The notes: a model not told the origin generated them from the letters alone. 64,000 nucleotides of DNA from Hyalangium minutum (GCF_000737315.1 NZ_JMCB01000020.1:166253-230252), one strand, 5' to 3'. Counted from the stretch's first letter, positions 52,821 to 63,293 are shown. Made by a program: numbers and translations.

Positions 52821-54188
52821 ATGTCCCGACAGACTCTCTCCACGAAGTTCCTGGCTCTCTGTTGTCTGACAGCGCTTTCCGGATGCGCAATGGACCCCTC
52901 CGAGGAGGGCGCCCTGGACACCCCGCCCGAGGCCGTGGGGCAGACCCAGGGCGAGCTTGAGTACAACCCGGGCTCGGGCTGGAACCTGGCCTGGTCGGAT
53001 GAGTTCGAGGGCTCCGCCCTGAACACCAACAACTGGACCACGCTCAACAGCGACTTCGATCCAGTCACCAACAACTGCCAGTTCGGCACGGGCGAGATCG
53101 AGTACCCCCGGACGCAGAACGTCTCGGTGAGCGGCGGCAAGCTCATCCTCAAGGCCGAGCGCACCGCCGCCACCACGGTGTCCGACACCCGCTGTGGCGC
53201 AGCGCAGCGCACGCTCTTCTCCGGCCGCCTGCACACCAAGGGCAAGGTGGAGAAGACCTACGGAAAGATTGTCGCGAGCATCAAGGTGCCCTCCGGCTAC
53301 GGCATGTGGCCGGCGTTCTGGACGCTGGGCGCCAACGTCCAGTCGGTAGGCTGGCCCGCCAGCGGGGAGATCGACATCCTCGAGTGGCACTCCAACGAGC
53401 CCAACTGGATGAAGTCCGCCACGCACTGGTCCGTCGGCTCCCAGGCCGACTGGGGCACGGGCCAGAGCGGCGGCTACAACCTGGCCGACTCCTTCCACAC
53501 CTATGAGGTGGAGTGGAACGCCAACTCCATGGTGTTCCGGCTGGATGGCACGTACGTGGGCGCGACCTACGGCCACAACGAGACCGAGTTCCAGCAGAAC
53601 CACTACATCATCCTGAACCTGGCGCTGGGCGGGAACTGGTATGGCTTCCCGGCCGCCAGCAGCATCGCGCTGACGCAGGGCCAGCCGAAGACCATGGAGG
53701 TCGAGTGGGTTCGCTGGTACCAGCCGGGCAGCACGCCTCCGTCGGGTATCTCGGTGGCCAACCCCAGCTTCGAGTCGGGCCTGTCCAACTGGACGACGTG
53801 GACGCCCAACGGCACCGCGGGCGCGGCCTTCAGCGAGACGTACAACGGCGGGCACTCGGGCTCCTACCACCTGACGCACTATAGCGGCTCGCCCTTCGAG
53901 ACCTGGACGTATCAGGTGAAGACGGGCCTGGCGAACGGCAACTACAAGGTTCGCGCCTGGGTGCGGAAGGGCGGCTCGTTCAACATCTCCCGGCTGCAGG
54001 GCAAGACGAGCGGCTCCGCCGCGCCGGTGTACACGTCGCTTGGCACGTATGGGAACTGGACGCTGGTGGAGACGCCCGTCATCAACGTCACCAGCGGCTA
54101 CCTGGAGTTCGGCTTCCACACCCAGGCCACCACGGGCAACACCGCCAACTTCATCCACATGGATGATGTGGAGATCGTGAAGCTCTAG
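52821..54188 (+). CDS. GH16 beta-glucanase (laminarinase-like) lipoprotein with C-terminal carbohydrate-binding module
   Basis: Lipobox LSGC; WSDEF, GMWPAFW, EIDILE catalytic motif; NPSFE CBM. Confidence 0.9.
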   Translation: MSRQTLSTKFLALCCLTALSGCAMDPSEEGALDTPPEAVGQTQGELEYNPGSGWNLAWSDEFEGSALNTNNWTTLNSDFDPVTNNCQFGTGEIEYPRTQNVSVSGGKLILKAERTAATTVSDTRCGAAQRTLFSGRLHTKGKVEKTYGKIVASIKVPSGYGMWPAFWTLGANVQSVGWPASGEIDILEWHSNEPNWMKSATHWSVGSQADWGTGQSGGYNLADSFHTYEVEWNANSMVFRLDGTYVGATYGHNETEFQQNHYIILNLALGGNWYGFPAASSIALTQGQPKTMEVEWVRWYQPGSTPPSGISVANPSFESGLSNWTTWTPNGTAGAAFSETYNGGHSGSYHLTHYSGSPFETWTYQVKTGLANGNYKVRAWVRKGGSFNISRLQGKTSGSAAPVYTSLGTYGNWTLVETPVINVTSGYLEFGFHTQATTGNTANFIHMDDVEIVKL

Positions 54189-57469: not shown

Positions 57470-58083
57470 ATGGTTCGCTGGATTCAGGGAGCGCTGGTCG
57501 GAGTCATTGCGGTGGTGAGCTGTGCAGTGATGGGTGGATGCGCCGCCATGCGCGGCCAGGGACAAACGAGAGAATTGCCCGCATGGTGAGCGAGTACGAC
57601 GAGGGCATGTCCGCCGCCGAGAGAGTCTTGCCCGACTCGCCCGACGCAGCCGCAAACATCCGAGTGCCCTACCAGCAAGTCCGCCGCTGCCGGGAGGACC
57701 ACCCAAGCGAGGTTCAGGACTATCCGGATGTCGAGGTGCAGACCTCCCGCGGCACCCGCGGCTGTGGCGAGAGGCGCATCTCCCTGACGAGTAATGTGGA
57801 TGGGACGGGTGCCTGGACGCGCCCGATTCGCCAGGCGCAGGATGACGACTACATTCCGAAGCCGTGCGACAAGATGGAGAAGGCGGCCCCGCCTCCGCCC
57901 GGCAAGGATTTCGAATCGGCGCACGCTGGCATCCAGGGCCTCTGCGGCCCGACCGCGCGCATCTATTACCAGGAGTGGCAGCACCGGACGAATGCCCTGG
58001 GCGTGGCGGTGCAGCGCCAAGCGGGCGTCATCTGCCAGGTGGTCGACGAGACGCGTCCGAAGTGGTGGATGGAGAGCTTCTAG
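57470..58083 (+). pseudogene. Frameshifted Cys-containing lipoprotein gene
   Basis: Signal peptide and lipobox VMGGC in one frame (ATG 57470, GGAG RBS); body continues in another frame; one extra G in CAGGGA (~57560) would join them. Confidence 0.55.
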
Positions 58084-58089
58084 CCCTCA

Positions 58090-58385
58090 GCGCGAAGCGG
58101 AGCTCGCCGGGGCCGGCGGGCACCGCCGTGGGCGGCTCGTCCATGGGCGGCCTGGCCGCGCTCTATGCGCACTTCCGCCATCCGGACCTGTTCGGCGCCG
58201 CGCTGTGCATGTCACCGTCCCTGGGGTTCGCGGACAGAAAGATCTTCGACTACGTCGCCGCGCAGCCCAAGCCGTGGACCTCGCGCATCTACATCGACGC
58301 GGGCGCCAAGGAAGACGGGGGCTCCATGGTCGCCGACGCGGAGCGCCTGGTCCACCACCTGCGCGAGCGCGGCTGGGACGGCGGG
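58090..58385 (+). pseudogene. Internal fragment of an alpha/beta-hydrolase (putative esterase family)
   Basis: TAVGGSSMGGLAALY..F.HPDLFG...MSPS, IYIDAG.KE; no start codon, N-terminus or C-terminal catalytic His. Confidence 0.7.
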
Positions 58386-58538
58386 GTCCGTCAGCGGCCT
58401 CCTCGGCCCCTGTGCTCCCTCCCTCCCCCTCAACTGGGACCCCATCCCTCTATGCGCTTGCCTGTTTTTTCATTTTTTTTGGGACGACCGGGAATTCGGG
58501 CCCTCTTCCTCATGAACTCGCCGGTCACAGGAAGAACG

Positions 58539-59033
58539 ATGCGCAAAACGATGATGCCCCTCTTGGCGTTTGCGTCGCTGGCGCTCGTCCCCACGGCCTT
58601 GGCCGGCAACACCGTCCTGGCGCCGCACTCCGGCACGGTGACGGCCACTACGTACAACCCGGATGGCTCGTTCCACGGCGCTGTGGACATCACCCCCAGC
58701 GCCCCCTGCGGCTACTGGGGCGTCTCGACAGGGTTCGTGGGCTCTCTCTTGTGGAACATCACCATCAACAGCACCGCGACCACGTGCACGGCCGCCACCG
58801 GCAACGTGGCCCTGCACACCTTCGCGGACGGAATGGCGTTCCGCGTCAAGGACTTCCTCAGGACCCCCGCCTCGGCCGACAAGACGTGCGATCGCTGCCA
58901 GATCGGAGACTCGGGCATCAACACTCACCTCCAGGTCAACAAGAGCGGCACCAAGGACACCTCCTGGTACTCGGGCTACACCACCCAGGGTGAGGTCATC
59001 GATCTCGGAGAGATCATCGGCGTCATCAACTAG
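58539..59033 (+). CDS. Secreted M23-like protein P1 (catalytically degenerate)
   Basis: Sec signal; HGAVD; TCDRC; HxH position reads NTH; paralog of three neighbours. Confidence 0.7.
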   Translation: MRKTMMPLLAFASLALVPTALAGNTVLAPHSGTVTATTYNPDGSFHGAVDITPSAPCGYWGVSTGFVGSLLWNITINSTATTCTAATGNVALHTFADGMAFRVKDFLRTPASADKTCDRCQIGDSGINTHLQVNKSGTKDTSWYSGYTTQGEVIDLGEIIGVIN

Positions 59034-59096
59034 CGCGCTCCCGTTCCCGAAGTTTCCCCACACACGGGCCGGGAGACCGGCCGAGAGGCACTCACG

Positions 59097-59624
59097 ATGC
59101 GCAACATGATGAAGATGGCCCTGGCGGCGCTGGTTTCCCTGGCGCTCATTCCCACCGCGGCGGCCGCGCACACGGTCAAGGGGCCGTACTCCGGCACGGT
59201 GACGGCCACCACCTATTACCCGAGCGGCGGGTACCACGGCGCCATTGACGTCGCCAGCAGCAATGGCTGCGGCTACTGGGGCGTCGAGACGGCCGTGGTG
59301 GGCTCGGTCTCCTGGAACGTGACCATCATGACCACCGGCACCGTCTGCTACGGCAACGGCTACGAGAACGCGAACACAGCAGTGCACACCTGGGCGGACG
59401 GCTGGAAGTTCCACCTGAAGCACTTCCTCAAGACCGCCAGCTCGTACGACCGGACGTGCGACCGCTGCCAGGTCGGCGACGAGGGCGGAACCGGCCAGGC
59501 CACCGGCCCACACACCCACCTCATGCAGGAGAAGAACGGCACCAAGGACACCTCCTGGTACTCGGGCTACACCACCCAGGGTGAGTTCGTGGACCGCACC
59601 GAGACCCTCGGCGTCCTCGACTGA
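59097..59624 (+). CDS. Secreted M23-like metallopeptidase P2
   Basis: Sec signal; HGAID, LKHF, GGTGQATGPHTH resembling the M23 G.TG.STGPHLH motif. Confidence 0.75.
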   Translation: MRNMMKMALAALVSLALIPTAAAAHTVKGPYSGTVTATTYYPSGGYHGAIDVASSNGCGYWGVETAVVGSVSWNVTIMTTGTVCYGNGYENANTAVHTWADGWKFHLKHFLKTASSYDRTCDRCQVGDEGGTGQATGPHTHLMQEKNGTKDTSWYSGYTTQGEFVDRTETLGVLD

Positions 59625-59756
59625 GCGGCCGCCGCGGAAGCACGCGCCCCCGGGCGCCGAGGCCCTTCGTGAGGACCTGCTCCTCACGCGGGGCCTCTGT
59701 CTTTCCGGGCATTTACGCACTGTGCGCAAACATCCTAGATGCCTCGATTCGCTTGA

Positions 59757-59785
59757 TATCCAAGAATTTAATTATTTCTTGGGAT
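59757..59785. promoter_or_regulatory. AT-rich imperfect palindrome upstream of the HEAT gene pair
   Basis: ATCCAAGAATTTAATTATTTCTTGGGAT, preceded by TTGATA. Confidence 0.4.
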
Positions 59786-59840
59786 GGCGGTGAGTTCGGG
59801 GGCTCTACAGGGATGGAACCCCTCCACCAGGCCCACCGCC

Positions 59841-61055
59841 ATGACTTCAGCATCCAGCTCTTCCCCTCCGTCAGGCACCTCGAGCCGGCGCAAGCCGCTG
59901 CTGGTGGCCGGGGCCGGCCTCGCCGCCCTGCTGGCCGGAGTGGCGCTGATCGGCCGCGGTGGGAGCCAGGAGCGCCCGGCTGAGACGGAGCCCGCCGCCG
60001 CCGCGCAGCAGGCCCAGGCGAAGCAGGACCCGGCGCGCAAGACGGGCACCCCCGGCCCGGCCGCGCCCCTGGCCCCGGGCGAGGAGGCCAAGGCCCCGCG
60101 CTTCACCTCCACCCTCTGCTGGCAGGAACTGGAGCGCTTCAACGAGGGGGTGACGATCCACAACTTCCGCGAGTGGGCCGCGCCCCTGTTGAACTCGCGC
60201 GATGGGCTCGTCCGGGACTTTCTGCAGGAGCGCCTCACGGAGCTCATCGGCAAGAACCCGGCGAATGCGATCGAGGTGCTGGAGTGGTCCCGCGATGCCC
60301 AGGGCAAGTCCTTCAAGGTGTACCTGACGGCCGTGAGGGACTCCGAGGCCGTGCACCAGCCCCAGGTGGCCACGCGGCTCATGGACATGGGCCTGGACAA
60401 CACCCTCCCAGCCGAGCGGCGCGCGGGCCTGATCTCCGCCCTGGACACGCAGAAGCGGCTGGCACCGGCGGCGCTCGACAAGCTCACCACCCTCGCCAAT
60501 GATCCCGCCTCCGTCGATGCGGGCTGGGCCGCGGCCCGCACCATCGCGCGGGTCATGAAGCGCGAGTTCAAGCAGAACGCGAGCATCACCCCCTACATGG
60601 ACAAGCTGCTCACCATCGGGGCCCAGTCGCCCGACGAGCAGGTCCGCTATCTGGGACAGATGATGCCCATGCACGCCGCGCCCCTCCTCGATGCGACGGA
60701 GACCGAGCGGTTCGCGAAGATCCTCGTGGGCGAGGGCAACGAGGACGGCCGGGACGCGGCGGCGCACAACCTCTCCCTGTCCCTGGACAAGGGGAAGGTG
60801 CTGGACCTGTTCGCCAAGACCTTCGAGACCGAGCAGTCGCTGTGCGTGAAATGGGCCCTCTTCCGCTTCTCCGCGCGCACCGCCGGCAAGCGCGCCCTGC
60901 CCGTCATGGCGAACATGGTCGCCATGGACCCGCGCTTCCAGGCCATCTACCAGGACTTCGAGCGCATCTACGCCAGCGGCACCCTGGACTTCGTGCGGCT
61001 CTACAACAGCCTGCCCAACCAGGATCCCTTCAACTGCCTGGATCGCCACGAATGA
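59841..61055 (+). CDS. Membrane-anchored HEAT/ARM-like helical repeat protein
   Basis: N-terminal TM after RRK, Ala/Pro linker, then an all-helical body; ATGA overlap with the next gene. Confidence 0.65.
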   Translation: MTSASSSSPPSGTSSRRKPLLVAGAGLAALLAGVALIGRGGSQERPAETEPAAAAQQAQAKQDPARKTGTPGPAAPLAPGEEAKAPRFTSTLCWQELERFNEGVTIHNFREWAAPLLNSRDGLVRDFLQERLTELIGKNPANAIEVLEWSRDAQGKSFKVYLTAVRDSEAVHQPQVATRLMDMGLDNTLPAERRAGLISALDTQKRLAPAALDKLTTLANDPASVDAGWAAARTIARVMKREFKQNASITPYMDKLLTIGAQSPDEQVRYLGQMMPMHAAPLLDATETERFAKILVGEGNEDGRDAAAHNLSLSLDKGKVLDLFAKTFETEQSLCVKWALFRFSARTAGKRALPVMANMVAMDPRFQAIYQDFERIYASGTLDFVRLYNSLPNQDPFNCLDRHE

Positions 61056-62062
61056 GCACGGGAACTCCCATGACACGCACCTTGTGTTTCCGCACCGGCA
61101 CCCTCCTGCTCGCGCTCACGCTCTGCCCGCTGCTGCCTGGCACCGCCGCAGCCCAGGTGATCGCCCCGGGCCCCGCGCTTCAGGGCGAGAGCTGCTCGGT
61201 CGCAGGGTTGATGGACTCCATCCGCCACGGGCTCAAGTCGAACTCCGAGGCCTACAAGAAGTACCTGCGCACGCTGCTGCGCGAGTCCGCCGTCACCCTG
61301 CCCGATCAGGAGCTGCGGGCCGCGTTCGAGCGGGAGACAGACCCCGTCATGGCCGAGCACCTGGCAGCCGCCATGGTGGCGCGGACCGAGCGCGGGGCGG
61401 ACCCCGAGGCGATCAAGGCCGTGGCGAAGCGGGCCCTGGAGGAGCACGACCCGGCCCTGCGGTCCGCCGCGGTCCGCTCGATGCGGCGCACCAGCGCCCT
61501 GGAGAGCACGGACGGCGCGTACGAGAAGCTGGTGCGCGACGCCTCCCCCGAGGTGCGCCAGGAGGCCGCGACGAACATCGTCGAGGACATCCAGGAGGTC
61601 TACTCGGGCTATCACGGCGTGGCCTCGGACGCCGCGGTGTCGGCCGCGGCCGCCGCCACGGATCCCAAGGTGACGGCGAAGATCCTCGGCAACATGGACA
61701 CCCAGATGATCAGCGCCGGCTCGGCCGGCAAGATTCAGTCGCTGCTGCGCAGCGATGATGCCGAGGTGCGCAGGGCGGCGGCGCTCGCGCTGGGCGGGGT
61801 GCCCGCGGAGCAGATGGCCAACGCCCGGCAGTCGGTGCTCGCCATGTACCGCGACGAGCAGGACGCCAGCGTGCGCAAGGCGCTCCTGCAGAGCATCGCC
61901 CAGTTGGGCTTCTTTGGCGCGATCCCCGAGCTGCAGCGGCTGCGGAGCACCGACCCCAGCCTGGCTCCGGAGATCGACGCATGGATTCGAGTTCTCAGCT
62001 TGGACCTTCAGGAGTGGAACCTGATCCTGAGGGAGAAGCAGCGGCTGCAGCAGGTTCCGTAG
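61052..62062 (+). CDS. Secreted HEAT-repeat protein
   Basis: Signal peptide ending TAAA-Q; D.SPEVRQEAA, DDAEVRRAAALALG, DASVRKALL HEAT motifs. Confidence 0.75.
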   Translation: MSTGTPMTRTLCFRTGTLLLALTLCPLLPGTAAAQVIAPGPALQGESCSVAGLMDSIRHGLKSNSEAYKKYLRTLLRESAVTLPDQELRAAFERETDPVMAEHLAAAMVARTERGADPEAIKAVAKRALEEHDPALRSAAVRSMRRTSALESTDGAYEKLVRDASPEVRQEAATNIVEDIQEVYSGYHGVASDAAVSAAAAATDPKVTAKILGNMDTQMISAGSAGKIQSLLRSDDAEVRRAAALALGGVPAEQMANARQSVLAMYRDEQDASVRKALLQSIAQLGFFGAIPELQRLRSTDPSLAPEIDAWIRVLSLDLQEWNLILREKQRLQQVP

Positions 62063-62112
62063 AGACGTCCATCCCCCCCCAGGGCCGTGAACCGGCTCGA
62101 GAGGAAAAACCG

Positions 62113-62640
62113 ATGCGTAAGACGATGAAGCTGCCCCTGGCAGCCCTGGCTTCCCTGGCGCTTGTCCCCGCGACCGTGACCGCGCACACCGTGAAGGCGC
62201 CGTACACCGCCACGGTCACCACCACCACGTACTACTCGAGCGGCTCGTTCCACGGCGCCGTCGACGTCTCCAGCGGCAGCTGCGACTACTGGGGCGTGGA
62301 GACGGGCGTGGTGGGCTCGGTCTCCTGGAACGTGTCCATCCGGACCACCGCCCACTACTGCAACTCGGGCAACGGCAGCGGCAACCAGAACGAGGCGCTG
62401 CACACCTGGGCGGACGGCTGGCAGTTCCGCATCTGGCACTTCAACAAGACCGCCGCCTCGGTGGACAAGACCTGCGACCGCTGCCAGGTCGGCGACGAGG
62501 GCTCCACCGGTAACTCCACGGGCGCCCACACCCACATGCAGCAGACCAAGAGCGGCACCTACGACACCTCCTGGTACTCGGGCTACACCACCAAGGGTGA
62601 GGCCGTGGACCGCACCGAGACCCTCGGCGTCCTCGACTGA
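62113..62640 (+). CDS. Secreted M23-like metallopeptidase P3
   Basis: Sec signal; HGAVD, IWHF, GSTGNSTGAHTH; closest paralog of P2. Confidence 0.75.
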   Translation: MRKTMKLPLAALASLALVPATVTAHTVKAPYTATVTTTTYYSSGSFHGAVDVSSGSCDYWGVETGVVGSVSWNVSIRTTAHYCNSGNGSGNQNEALHTWADGWQFRIWHFNKTAASVDKTCDRCQVGDEGSTGNSTGAHTHMQQTKSGTYDTSWYSGYTTKGEAVDRTETLGVLD

Positions 62641-62771
62641 TTCAAGCAGCTCGAGGTGAAGCACCGCCTCGGCCAGGGAGCGGGACTTCCCGGTTCCGCT
62701 CTCCGGCCGGCTCTCCGCGGGACTTCCCGCACCTTCCCCACGGGGCTGGGATACCGGCCCGGAACCCTCCC

Positions 62772-63293
62772 ATGCCACGAACGCTGAAGGCCCTGGGCGC
62801 GCTCGCCGCGCTGGCCGCACTCGCCCCCTCCCCCGCTCCCGCCCGCAACGTCGAAGCGCCCCTGGCTGGCACGGTGACAGCCACCACGTACTCCTCGAGC
62901 GGCGCGTTCCACGGCGCCGTGGACATCTCCGGCGGCACTTGCGGCACAACCAACGTCACCACGGCGGTCTTCGGCTCGCTGGCGTGGAACGTGGTCATCA
63001 ACACCGCTAACACCATCTGCTACGCGAACCTCGCCATCCCGCAGAACGAGGTGCGGCACACCTTCGCCGACGGCTTCACGTTCCGCCTGATGCACTTCAA
63101 CCCGTCGGCGGCCTCGTATGACCGGACGTGTGATCGCTGCAACATCGGCAAGGCCAGCTCGCCCGGCAACCCGGACTCCGACATCCACCTCCAGTTGGAC
63201 AAGAGCGGTACCAAGGACACCTCCTGGTACTCGGGCTCCACCACCAAGGGCGAGGCCCTGTCCCTGGGCGAGCGCGTCGGCGTCCTCGACTGA
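62772..63293 (+). CDS. Secreted M23-like protein P4 (partly degenerate)
   Basis: Sec signal; HGAVD, LMHF, TCDRC; HxH position reads DIH. Confidence 0.7.
   Translation: MPRTLKALGALAALAALAPSPAPARNVEAPLAGTVTATTYSSSGAFHGAVDISGGTCGTTNVTTAVFGSLAWNVVINTANTICYANLAIPQNEVRHTFADGFTFRLMHFNPSAASYDRTCDRCNIGKASSPGNPDSDIHLQLDKSGTKDTSWYSGSTTKGEALSLGERVGVLD

Follow-up and report, generated by a model that had tools for sequence, protein, structure and literature searches.

We analyzed a cluster of six co-oriented genes, named here P1, P2, HEAT1, HEAT2, P3, and P4, in a stretch of 64,000 nucleotides from Hyalangium minutum (NZ_JMCB01000020.1:166253-230252), which we refer to as the window. The features were read on one strand, and the six genes occupy positions 58539-63293 (+) in DNA with a G+C content of 68%. 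Four of the genes (P1–P4) encode small proteins that share 52–70% pairwise identity in an alignment of the four open reading frames (ORFs), each with a signal peptide at its start. The proteins P2 and P3 carry a complete set of M23-type active-site residues (live copies), and P1 and P4 are degenerate at these positions (dead copies). A first-pass annotation of the window had described the layout as dead-live, HEAT-HEAT, live-dead. This order and the + strand were confirmed, and HEAT1 itself gave no Pfam match. The features of the cluster are listed in Table 1.

Table 1. Genes and non-coding elements of the cluster (positions counted from the first letter of the window)
Feature	Position	Strand	Description
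T-rich conserved element upstream of P1	58464..58510	+	47 nt, 91-94% identical before the P1-type genes of loci L007, L004, and L005
P1	58539..59033	+	164 aa, predicted exported degenerate M23 domain, short-loop type, four Cys
P2	59097..59624	+	175 aa, predicted exported M23-type peptidase, complete active-site set, loop GGTGQATGPHTH
G+C-rich hairpin between P2 and HEAT1	59659..59697	+	16 bp, then GTCTTTCC; T-rich tail to 59705
HEAT1	59841..61055	+	~404 aa: N-terminal membrane anchor, Pro/Ala-rich linker, helical domain
HEAT2	61052..62062	+	336 aa, signal peptide, HEAT repeats
P3	62113..62640	+	175 aa, predicted exported M23-type peptidase, complete active-site set
P4	62772..63293	+	173 aa, predicted exported degenerate M23 domain, Zn site kept, loop SSPGNPDS

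The G+C content at the third codon position (GC3) was 0.91–0.96 in all six genes (0.91–0.92 in P1 and P4), with normal values at the first and second positions (GC1 and GC2), which is the coding signature of this genome. Ribosome-binding sites and signal peptides are retained in P1 and P4. The closest relatives of the cluster are found in Archangium: HEAT1 shares 94% identity with a protein from a soil metagenome and 88% with its counterpart in A. gephyra, and a protein of Archangium lansingense matches P4 at 90% identity or more.

Fold and active-site signatures of P1–P4

When the six proteins were scanned against Pfam, NCBIfam, PHROGs, and PADLOC, only HEAT2 scored above threshold. NCBIfam gave no match for P1–P4, and the Pfam profile PF01551 reached 11.8 bits on P2 and P3 (E ~0.3, cut-off 28.7) and did not match P1 or P4. 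Over 56 family members, this profile produced 25 weak matches, none of them above threshold, and a few distant members do carry PF01551. Since the libraries give no family, we named the proteins M23 because of their fold, a profile match to zoocin A, and the spacing of their motifs. Zoocin A was the best sequence match in the PDB for a four-sequence profile (E 9e-4), and in this alignment the GxTGxxTGPHxH motif and H109 fall on their zoocin counterparts, H109 on the catalytic His; the LytM profile alignment places H109 one residue off from the catalytic His. In P2 and P3, H109 is located exactly 30 residues before H139, and Y41 six residues before the zinc ligand H47. This spacing agrees with the definition of M23 peptidases, which comprises an H(x)nD zinc motif, an HxH motif, and a catalytic His ~30 residues before the latter (LytM His260; PMC9662197).

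The AlphaFold models of P2 and P1 reached a predicted local distance difference test (pLDDT) score of 90 and 88, respectively. The mature part of P1–P4 is a single beta-rich domain directly after the signal peptide, which is the sole helix in the two models. When these models were compared with the PDB by Foldseek, the top 50 matches for P2 were all M23/LytM proteins, as were nearly all of those for P1 (probability 1.0, TM-score ~0.4–0.6). The matches include ShyA, DipM, EnpA, LytM, lysostaphin, LasA, beta-lytic protease, EnvC, and SpoIIQ, along with Csd1-Csd2 chains, which were among the best matches to both models and the top match for P1. Judged from the predicted structures, membership of the family in the M23 fold is established, with sequence scores that stay below the curated family thresholds.

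The active-site signatures were compared in the order Tyr-equivalent, zinc His, zinc Asp, the His 30 residues before HxH, and the first and second His of HxH (HxH-1 and HxH-2). The signature of P2 is Y41 H47 D51 H109 H139 H141, and that of P3 is identical, so that the motifs of these two proteins are KHF/WHF plus HTH. P1 has N40 H46 D50 D105 N128 H130 (KDF, NTH), and P4 has S41 H47 D51 H108 D137 H139 (MHF, DIH). All four proteins contain HGA(V/I)D, which was invariant among 219 full-length family proteins, and all four retain the second His of HxH. Both catalytic His residues are present in P2 and P3; P4 lacks only the one at HxH-1, and P1 lacks both. The earlier residue calls for the four proteins, covering the zinc ligands and the catalytic motifs, all proved correct in the alignment and the residue table. 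The same annotation had stated that P1 and P4 lack the G.TG.(S/A)TG loop, and this absence could now be specified: seven residues of the G(G/S)TGxxTG loop are deleted in P1, and in P4 the loop is replaced by a degenerate segment (Table 1), with the P4-type loop being near full length (14 vs 15 residues).

A further loss concerns the Tyr residue at the spacing of LytM Tyr204, the oxyanion-stabilizing residue six positions before the zinc ligand His210 (PMC9662197). It is also gone in P1 (N40) and P4 (S41), and its equivalent was conserved in 92% of the complete family members and in 34% of the P1-type proteins, but was absent from the P4 type. Because all three catalytic residues and two groove loops are lost, the inactivity of P1 can be safely inferred from its sequence.

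Degenerate lineages and selection on P1–P4

We pooled 223 distinct proteins of the family, of which 146 were complete, 74 had the zinc triad but were missing at least one of the two catalytic His residues, and three lacked a zinc ligand. Some of these last three look truncated or frameshifted. The triad was thus kept in 74 of the 77 degenerate relatives. In a neighbor-joining tree, P1 grouped with other short-loop copies and P4 fell in a separate clade, and both of these clades form long branches beside the tight P2 and P3 clades. The loop deletion of P1 is common to 38 proteins, 35 of which lack at least one catalytic His, whereas the other three keep all five residues. In the P4-type clade, HxH-1 is occupied by D, E, or S in all members, mostly by D or E, and some members with S at this position also have D, N, or Q in place of the remaining catalytic His. 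The classification of P1 and P4 as pseudo-enzymes, put forward in the first-pass annotation, therefore extends to their orthologs, which also lack catalytic residues (35 of the 38 short-loop proteins and all of the P4 type) while keeping the zinc triad, the four Cys residues, and the reading frame.

The number of losses was estimated by parsimony on 219 full-length proteins, with a tree built without the motif and loop columns and with four sequences of aberrant signature left out. No change was found at any of the zinc ligands, whereas H109 was lost independently at least 13 times and H139 at least 22 times, with 2–3 changes per Cys. The loss counts are probably somewhat high, as the neighbor-joining tree is noisy (the loop deletion maps as four events). 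Independently of the tree, more than 15 kinds of residue replace H139, and a variety of this extent indicates many independent losses of this His. Among the 38 P1-type proteins, the sites that are at least 95% conserved in the live enzymes remained at least 90% conserved, except for H109, T132, G133, and H139. Less strictly conserved sites that were also lost in the P1 type are Y41, the glycine loop at positions 86–90, W108, and R167. By this comparison, the P1 type has lost specifically the catalytic center and the groove walls, and it has retained its fold core, metal site, and disulfide Cys residues.

Four positions (A95, D101, D151, and D166) were considered as P1-specific interface residues and were rejected, as they also occur in the window P2 and P3 and in most Archangium P2/P3 copies (position 95 is T in P2 of L007). 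They are therefore features of the lineage and are not specific to P1.

Several paralogs have lost the zinc ligands too (L069 6799-7833, L001 8769-9257, L057 8556-9044, L073 9110-9595, and L056 8001-8504). The signatures found in this group are TVHRR, -THTR, PDHHH, -DHHH, and -DHHR. A smaller, fully degenerate class is thus apparent from the signatures beside the zinc-retaining one.

Selection was measured as the ratio of non-synonymous to synonymous substitution rates (dN/dS). With a Goldman-Yang maximum-likelihood (ML) model that included codon frequencies, the median dN/dS was 0.20 for P1 (range 0.13–0.54), 0.12 for P4, 0.10 for P3, and 0.05 for P2. The method of Nei and Gojobori (NG86) gave 0.29–1.0 for P4, values mostly of 0.1–0.7 for P2 and P3 (1.3 for one P3 pair), and ~1 for P5-type copies as well as for P1. 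At the family-core positions, the NG86 ratio of P1 was 0.77 compared to 0.09 for P2 and 0.12 for P3, meaning that most of the core constraint is lost in P1. A near-neutral reading of P1 from its NG86 ratio was rejected. NG86 undercounts synonymous change because GC3 exceeds 0.9, which inflates the ratio at the GC3 of 0.91–0.96 observed here, whereas the ML model allows for a GC3 of ~0.93; the absolute dN/dS values are model-dependent. The ranking P1 > P4 ≈ P3 > P2 was stable across the models, except for NG86, where P3 (0.48) lay above P2 (0.36). Relative to the live copies, the constraint on P1 was relaxed ~2–4 fold.

Three independent P1 pairs differed by 80–112 nucleotides each and contained no stop codon, an outcome with a joint probability of ~0.008 under random substitution, and all eight insertions or deletions in these pairs were in frame. 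Because of the ML ratios, the in-frame indels, and the absence of stop codons, P1 and P4 are, as far as their sequences tell, maintained genes under purifying selection and not decaying ones. The first-pass annotation had named two outcomes in the P1 and P4 orthologs that would speak against its proposal, retention of the His residues and neutral evolution. Neither was observed: the orthologs lack catalytic residues, and their evolution was not neutral once codon bias was modeled.

These data also bear on the explanation that P1 and P4 have no function and are slowly decaying duplicates, which turn over by birth and death and whose intact frames are a by-product of the high G+C content. We regard this as quite improbable. 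The NG86 ratios of P1 and the P5 type, the patchy presence of dead copies among close Archangium genomes, the further-decayed relatives that lack zinc ligands or are fragmentary (L005_1, L069, and L012), and the spurious long ORFs that are frequent in the G+C-rich window would all be expected from decay. However, decay would not account for the low ML ratios of P1 and P4, for the unchanged zinc triad next to 13–22 independent losses of each catalytic His, or for a loss of conservation that is confined to the catalytic positions among the 38 P1-type proteins. Nor would it account for frames free of stops and frame-shifting indels, with signal peptides and ribosome-binding sites kept.

For P4, inactivity is less certain than for P1, and a changed mechanism is possible. 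Carboxylates serve as the general base in other LAS-type zinc peptidases, e.g., VanX. P4 keeps the zinc triad and H108 and has an acidic residue, D137, at the position of the water-activating His, as do most P4-type proteins (D or E); its loop is nearly full length, and its constraint equals that of the live P3. Three short-loop proteins even keep all five residues. Nevertheless, it is unlikely that catalysis persists, with an altered mechanism or specificity, in some of the dead copies and especially in P4. The Tyr residue is lost and the GxTGxxTG loop rewritten in P4, in further P4-type members S occupies HxH-1 and the other catalytic His is replaced by D, N, or Q, and replacement of the HxH-1 His abolished the activity of EnpA (H109A; PMC8269130). 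This explanation cannot apply to P1, where all three catalytic residues are missing.

Compared against the same genomes, the two live copies of the window differed in their divergence. P2 showed an NG86 dS of ~0.21–0.26 with 84–89% amino acid identity, whereas P3 was less divergent, with a dS of ~0.04–0.16 and 89–97% identity. The left and right halves of the locus may have different histories through recombination or gene conversion.

Distribution and organization of the module

The family is small and confined to myxobacteria, with 187 matches at 90% clustering and, among 1.84 billion representatives, only 37 clusters at 50% identity. Nearly all members come from Archangium, Cystobacter, Hyalangium, Vitiosangium, Melittangium, Stigmatella, Myxococcus, Corallococcus, and Pyxidicoccus. 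We classified all family genes and all homologs of HEAT1 and HEAT2 in 74 loci (L numbers below), comprising the window, 65 loci from genomes, and 8 from metagenomes. By far the commonest architecture was HEAT1-HEAT2-live M23, found in 38 of the 74 loci. It was the sole form in the Myxococcus, Corallococcus, and Citreicoccus loci and the form of most Pyxidicoccus loci. Another six loci had the order live-HEAT1-HEAT2-live, so that 44 of the 74 contained one or more live enzymes without any dead copy. The M23 gene of the module in M. xanthus DK1622 is MXAN_0549, and P3 is its ortholog. By orthology, P3 thus represents the ancestral enzyme of the module, and P2 a second intact enzyme that was added upstream.

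Dead copies were seen only in expanded, Archangium-type loci, where they are peripheral and variable additions. The arrangement of the window, dead-live-HEAT1-HEAT2-live-dead, was shared only by A. lansingense (L007). Three further Archangium genomes had HEAT1-HEAT2-live-dead-live-HEAT1-HEAT2-live-dead, and the remaining variants included dead-dead-live-HEAT1-HEAT2-live, live-HEAT1-HEAT2 followed by two copies without zinc ligands and a third dead copy (L069), and live-dead or dead-live-dead clusters without HEAT genes (L015, L057, and L073). The number of dead copies per locus ranged from zero to three, and they were located on either side of the module, adjacent to each other, or distant from the HEAT genes.

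This distribution bears on the proposal, made in the first-pass annotation, that each tandem pair forms a coupled unit. On this reading, P1-P2 and P3-P4 would each be an obligate or regulatory live-dead heterodimer, as in Csd1-Csd2, with the dead subunit positioning the substrate or controlling its partner. The live and dead genes are indeed adjacent and co-oriented, their adjacency in either order recurs in independent contexts (e.g., L015, L057, L073, and L067), the dead copies are maintained by selection, and Csd1-Csd2 chains rank among the best structural matches. However, adjacency follows from tandem duplication alone, and the live enzymes mostly occur without a dead neighbor. The pairing is not fixed either: the variable dead copies include runs of two dead copies, or of two copies without zinc ligands and a dead one, and P4-type copies take the place of P1 beside P2 in L011 and L013. 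The helical domains through which Csd1 and Csd2 dimerize are absent here, Csd2 is without a metal site (PMC5053510), and no charge complementarity was found between the copies. The claim of coupled pairs was thus not upheld, and we consider heterodimers of this kind improbable.

HEAT2 was recognized by PF13646 (HEAT_2; 41.9 bits, 1.3e-10, cut-off 27.7) and by PF02985 (36.7 bits, 3e-9), and its PDB matches were alphaRep/HEAT-like designed proteins. HEAT1 of the window had no match in Pfam and no sequence relative in the PDB, even with a 26-sequence profile. Its N-terminus is basic and is followed by one hydrophobic helix, the linker, and the helical domain. Orthologs of HEAT1 are ~405 residues long; among the 120 listed, six carry PF13646, and some are named HEAT repeat protein. 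An alternative ATG of HEAT1 at 59784 is possible but is not used by the orthologs. No similarity was detectable between HEAT1 and HEAT2. HEAT1 adjoins an M23 gene in more than 50 loci, and in loci with two modules, HEAT1, HEAT2, and the downstream enzyme were duplicated and diverged jointly. Because the duplicated modules diverge together, a specific functional link between HEAT1, HEAT2, and the enzyme is indicated.

Two roles are possible for the HEAT proteins by analogy. They could regulate the peptidase in the envelope or serve as its adaptors, in the way that the helical-repeat proteins NlpI and LbcA serve M23 endopeptidases. Alternatively, they could be self-protection proteins, like the ankyrin-repeat protein Bd3460 of Bdellovibrio, which is encoded next to the predatory DD-endopeptidase Bd3459 (PMC4686830). 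In Bdellovibrio as in the present module, a predator encodes an established or putative cell-wall endopeptidase beside an exported alpha-helical repeat protein. The Bdellovibrio pair differs in its PBP4-type enzyme, its ankyrin repeat, and its one protector compared to two HEAT proteins, and the likeness is one of gene neighborhood only.

The cluster is likely transcribed in two units, P1(-P2) and HEAT1-HEAT2-P3(-P4). The genes that flank the T-rich element upstream of P1 are unrelated between L007, L004, and L005, and an AGGAAG ribosome-binding site follows at ~58530, between the element and P1. The element is probably P1's own promoter or 5′ leader. The hairpin between P2 and HEAT1 was conserved in 13 aligned loci, where RNAalifold gave −30 kcal/mol and 16 pairs, six of them with compensatory changes. 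The same hairpin is also located before HEAT1 in each of the two paralogous modules of L001 and L005. A consensus scan picked up only its inner stem (59679-59694), and an AT-rich, promoter-like stretch (59700-59783) follows. The hairpin is probably an intrinsic terminator that parts P1-P2 from HEAT1-HEAT2-P3, with the promoter of the HEAT operon after it, while a role as a regulatory leader is possible instead. The stop codon of HEAT1 and the start codon of HEAT2 overlap (ATGA), which suggests translational coupling of the two genes. Many loci also conserve the 50-nucleotide spacer between HEAT2 and P3. The palindrome GCACTGTGC, which lies upstream of HEAT1, was rejected as a conserved element, since it is not conserved in other loci. 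In the spacer between P3 and P4, the 13-nucleotide sequence GCGGGACTTCCCG, with the palindromic core GGGACTTCCC, forms an exact direct repeat (62680-62692 and 62717-62729). None of 100 shuffles gave as many matches, and the repeat was not found at the P3-P4 position in other loci and is thus specific to the window.

Upstream of P1 and downstream of P4, nothing was common to 15 related, mostly Archangium, loci except the short element before P1. The context gives no functional hint, because the flanking synteny is not shared. Scans of the window with Rfam and for tRNA genes gave no matches. Directly upstream of P1, in the same frame and with no stop codon between, is an esterase fragment at 58060-58420 (within ORF 57864-59033), which matches only profile positions 96–206 of the 251 in Pfam PF00756. 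The N-terminal part of this esterase was found in no frame, and the fragment is probably the remnant of a gene truncated by rearrangement at the edge of the cluster. A secreted GH16 beta-glucanase with a C-terminal extension is encoded at 52821-54188, 4 kb upstream of the cluster. It is a candidate lytic enzyme of a predatory myxobacterium, and its linkage to the M23 module is not conserved.

Some observations were made at single loci. L070 (5976-8510) contains a live M23 gene, HEAT1, and a degenerate M23 gene (HDNGH), with HEAT2 missing, and was the sole locus with a broken HEAT pair. In L072 (50-2892), two tandem degenerate genes (HDNKH and HDHKH) are immediately followed by the genes for an AHH-nuclease toxin and an Imm11 immunity protein, so that dead M23 copies there adjoin a polymorphic-toxin pair. 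In M. xanthus (L049 3947-5620), a Ser/Thr protein kinase gene is located directly upstream of HEAT1, and in L067 (137-4110) the opposite strand carries a kinase-TPR gene and a sigma-factor gene upstream; all of these possibly encode regulators of the module. One locus with the full module is labeled Comamonas (L043, Comamonas sp. KCTC 72670). The Comamonas-labeled M23 proteins (that of L043 and a cluster member from Comamonas sp. JC664) belong to the same 90%-identity cluster as a Myxococcus xanthus protein, and these records are probably mislabeled or contaminated myxobacterial assemblies.

Proposed role of the dead copies and comparison with known systems

The explanation that we favor, with modest confidence, is that P1 and P4 are optional exported M23 domains that are non-catalytic, probably hold zinc, and are kept for binding, without being obligate subunits of P2 or P3. 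The region is an Archangium-specific expansion of a three-gene Myxococcaceae module, HEAT1-HEAT2-M23, whose M23 protein would be a small exported single-domain zinc endopeptidase with two probable disulfides. P2 and P3 would be active enzymes of this type, probably acting on peptidoglycan. P1 and P4 descend from two separate old paralog lineages that arose by tandem duplication, each of which has lost the His 30 residues before HxH and/or the HxH-1 His, the Tyr residue, and the groove loops. Purifying selection has kept the zinc triad, the Cys residues, the fold core, the signal peptide, and the frame. The dead copies would then work in trans, either within the cell envelope or extracellularly, by binding what the live enzymes bind (cell-wall peptide or the HEAT proteins), and would thereby modulate where or when the live peptidases act. 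Of this explanation, the signatures, the fold, the distribution, and the selection come from the sequence and model comparisons, and zinc binding, inactivity, the binding role, and peptidoglycan as the substrate are inferred.

Several points weigh against this explanation. The NG86 ratio of P1 was 0.5–1.75 with a median of ~1.0, so that the codon model determines how strong the constraint appears, and at non-synonymous sites P1 evolves ~5 times faster than either P2 or P3. Most genomes lack dead copies. In some relatives the zinc ligands have been lost as well or only fragments are left (L069, L005, L057, and L073), as would be expected if many of the duplicates were on their way out. The deletion or rewriting of the groove loops in P1 weakens the idea that it binds the same substrate as the live enzymes. 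No conserved surface patch specific to P1 was found among the 38 P1-type proteins, and the dead and live copies showed no complementarity in charge or isoelectric point. A search of the literature open to searching on MXAN_0546-0550, Q1DEV5, and related identifiers found no paper and no experimental datum on the family.

A more far-reaching proposal, which we regard as doubtful, is that the family repeatedly turns spare copies into zinc-retaining non-catalytic domains, which would imply selection for a zinc-dependent binding function unlike that of any LytM pseudo-enzyme described so far. As one possibility, a dead copy could be a reader of cell-wall peptides by which the peptidoglycan of the prey or of the cell itself is marked or opened for the live enzymes. 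As another, it could be a decoy that titrates the HEAT proteins, if these are inhibitors, and so releases the live peptidases. On this proposal, the dead copies together with HEAT1 and HEAT2 would form an uncharacterized three-part control of a predatory or developmental cell-wall hydrolase.

EnvC, NlpD, and DipM are multidomain proteins with coiled-coil or LysM domains and are conserved housekeeping proteins of cell division. P1 and P4 differ from this type in several respects: they keep all the zinc ligands, they are single-domain proteins (P1–P4 have 164–175 residues) without coiled-coil or LysM domains, they are lineage-restricted and fast-evolving, and the locus contains no amidase gene. 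They resemble EnvC, NlpD, DipM, and ActS, which are activators of amidases or autolysins, in having an M23 fold whose catalytic apparatus is lost (PMC9662197, PMC9238320). Those proteins are kept for a non-catalytic, regulatory binding role, and the same role may be suspected for P1 and P4. The analogy with EnvC, NlpD, and DipM, drawn already in the first-pass annotation, is thus imperfect: it holds for the fold and the missing catalytic residues, but not for the zinc site or the domain architecture. Degenerate M23 folds are defined as lacking the catalytic motifs and/or zinc (PMC9662197).

The likeness to Csd1-Csd2 of Helicobacter pylori (M23B) lies in an active M23 protein that is paired with a degenerate one, both with the LytM fold (PMC5053510, PMC9662197). 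Csd1 and Csd2 dimerize via N-terminal helical domains, whereas P1–P4 are bare catalytic domains behind a signal peptide. The metal ligands of Csd2 are incomplete and no zinc is bound (PMC5053510), whereas P1 and P4 keep the whole triad. Moreover, Csd1 and Csd2 are fixed partners, in contrast to the dead copies studied here, which are optional and interchangeable.

The live copies P2 and P3 have their counterparts in lysostaphin, LytM, zoocin A, LasA, and beta-lytic protease. They share with these the Hx3D motif, the His 30 residues before HxH, the Tyr residue, the secretion signal, and the G(G/S)TGxxTG(P/A)HxH motif. They differ in a much smaller mature domain (~150 residues), which lacks a propeptide and any targeting domain such as SH3b, as well as in their four invariant Cys residues, their scores below the Pfam and NCBIfam thresholds, and their being encoded with two HEAT-type genes.

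Known regulators of cell-wall hydrolysis include M23/LytM domains that are catalytically dead. The distinctive feature of the family described here, as read from the signatures of 219 full-length proteins, is the recurrent loss of catalytic residues with retention of the zinc triad, in an uncharacterized module specific to myxobacteria. If the dead copies do nothing measurable, they would be a clean natural example of the birth-and-death evolution of a secreted enzyme family. If they bind zinc and a ligand, they would represent a new functional class of LytM pseudo-enzyme, and would offer a handle on how predatory, sporulating myxobacteria control or target a secreted peptidoglycan peptidase.

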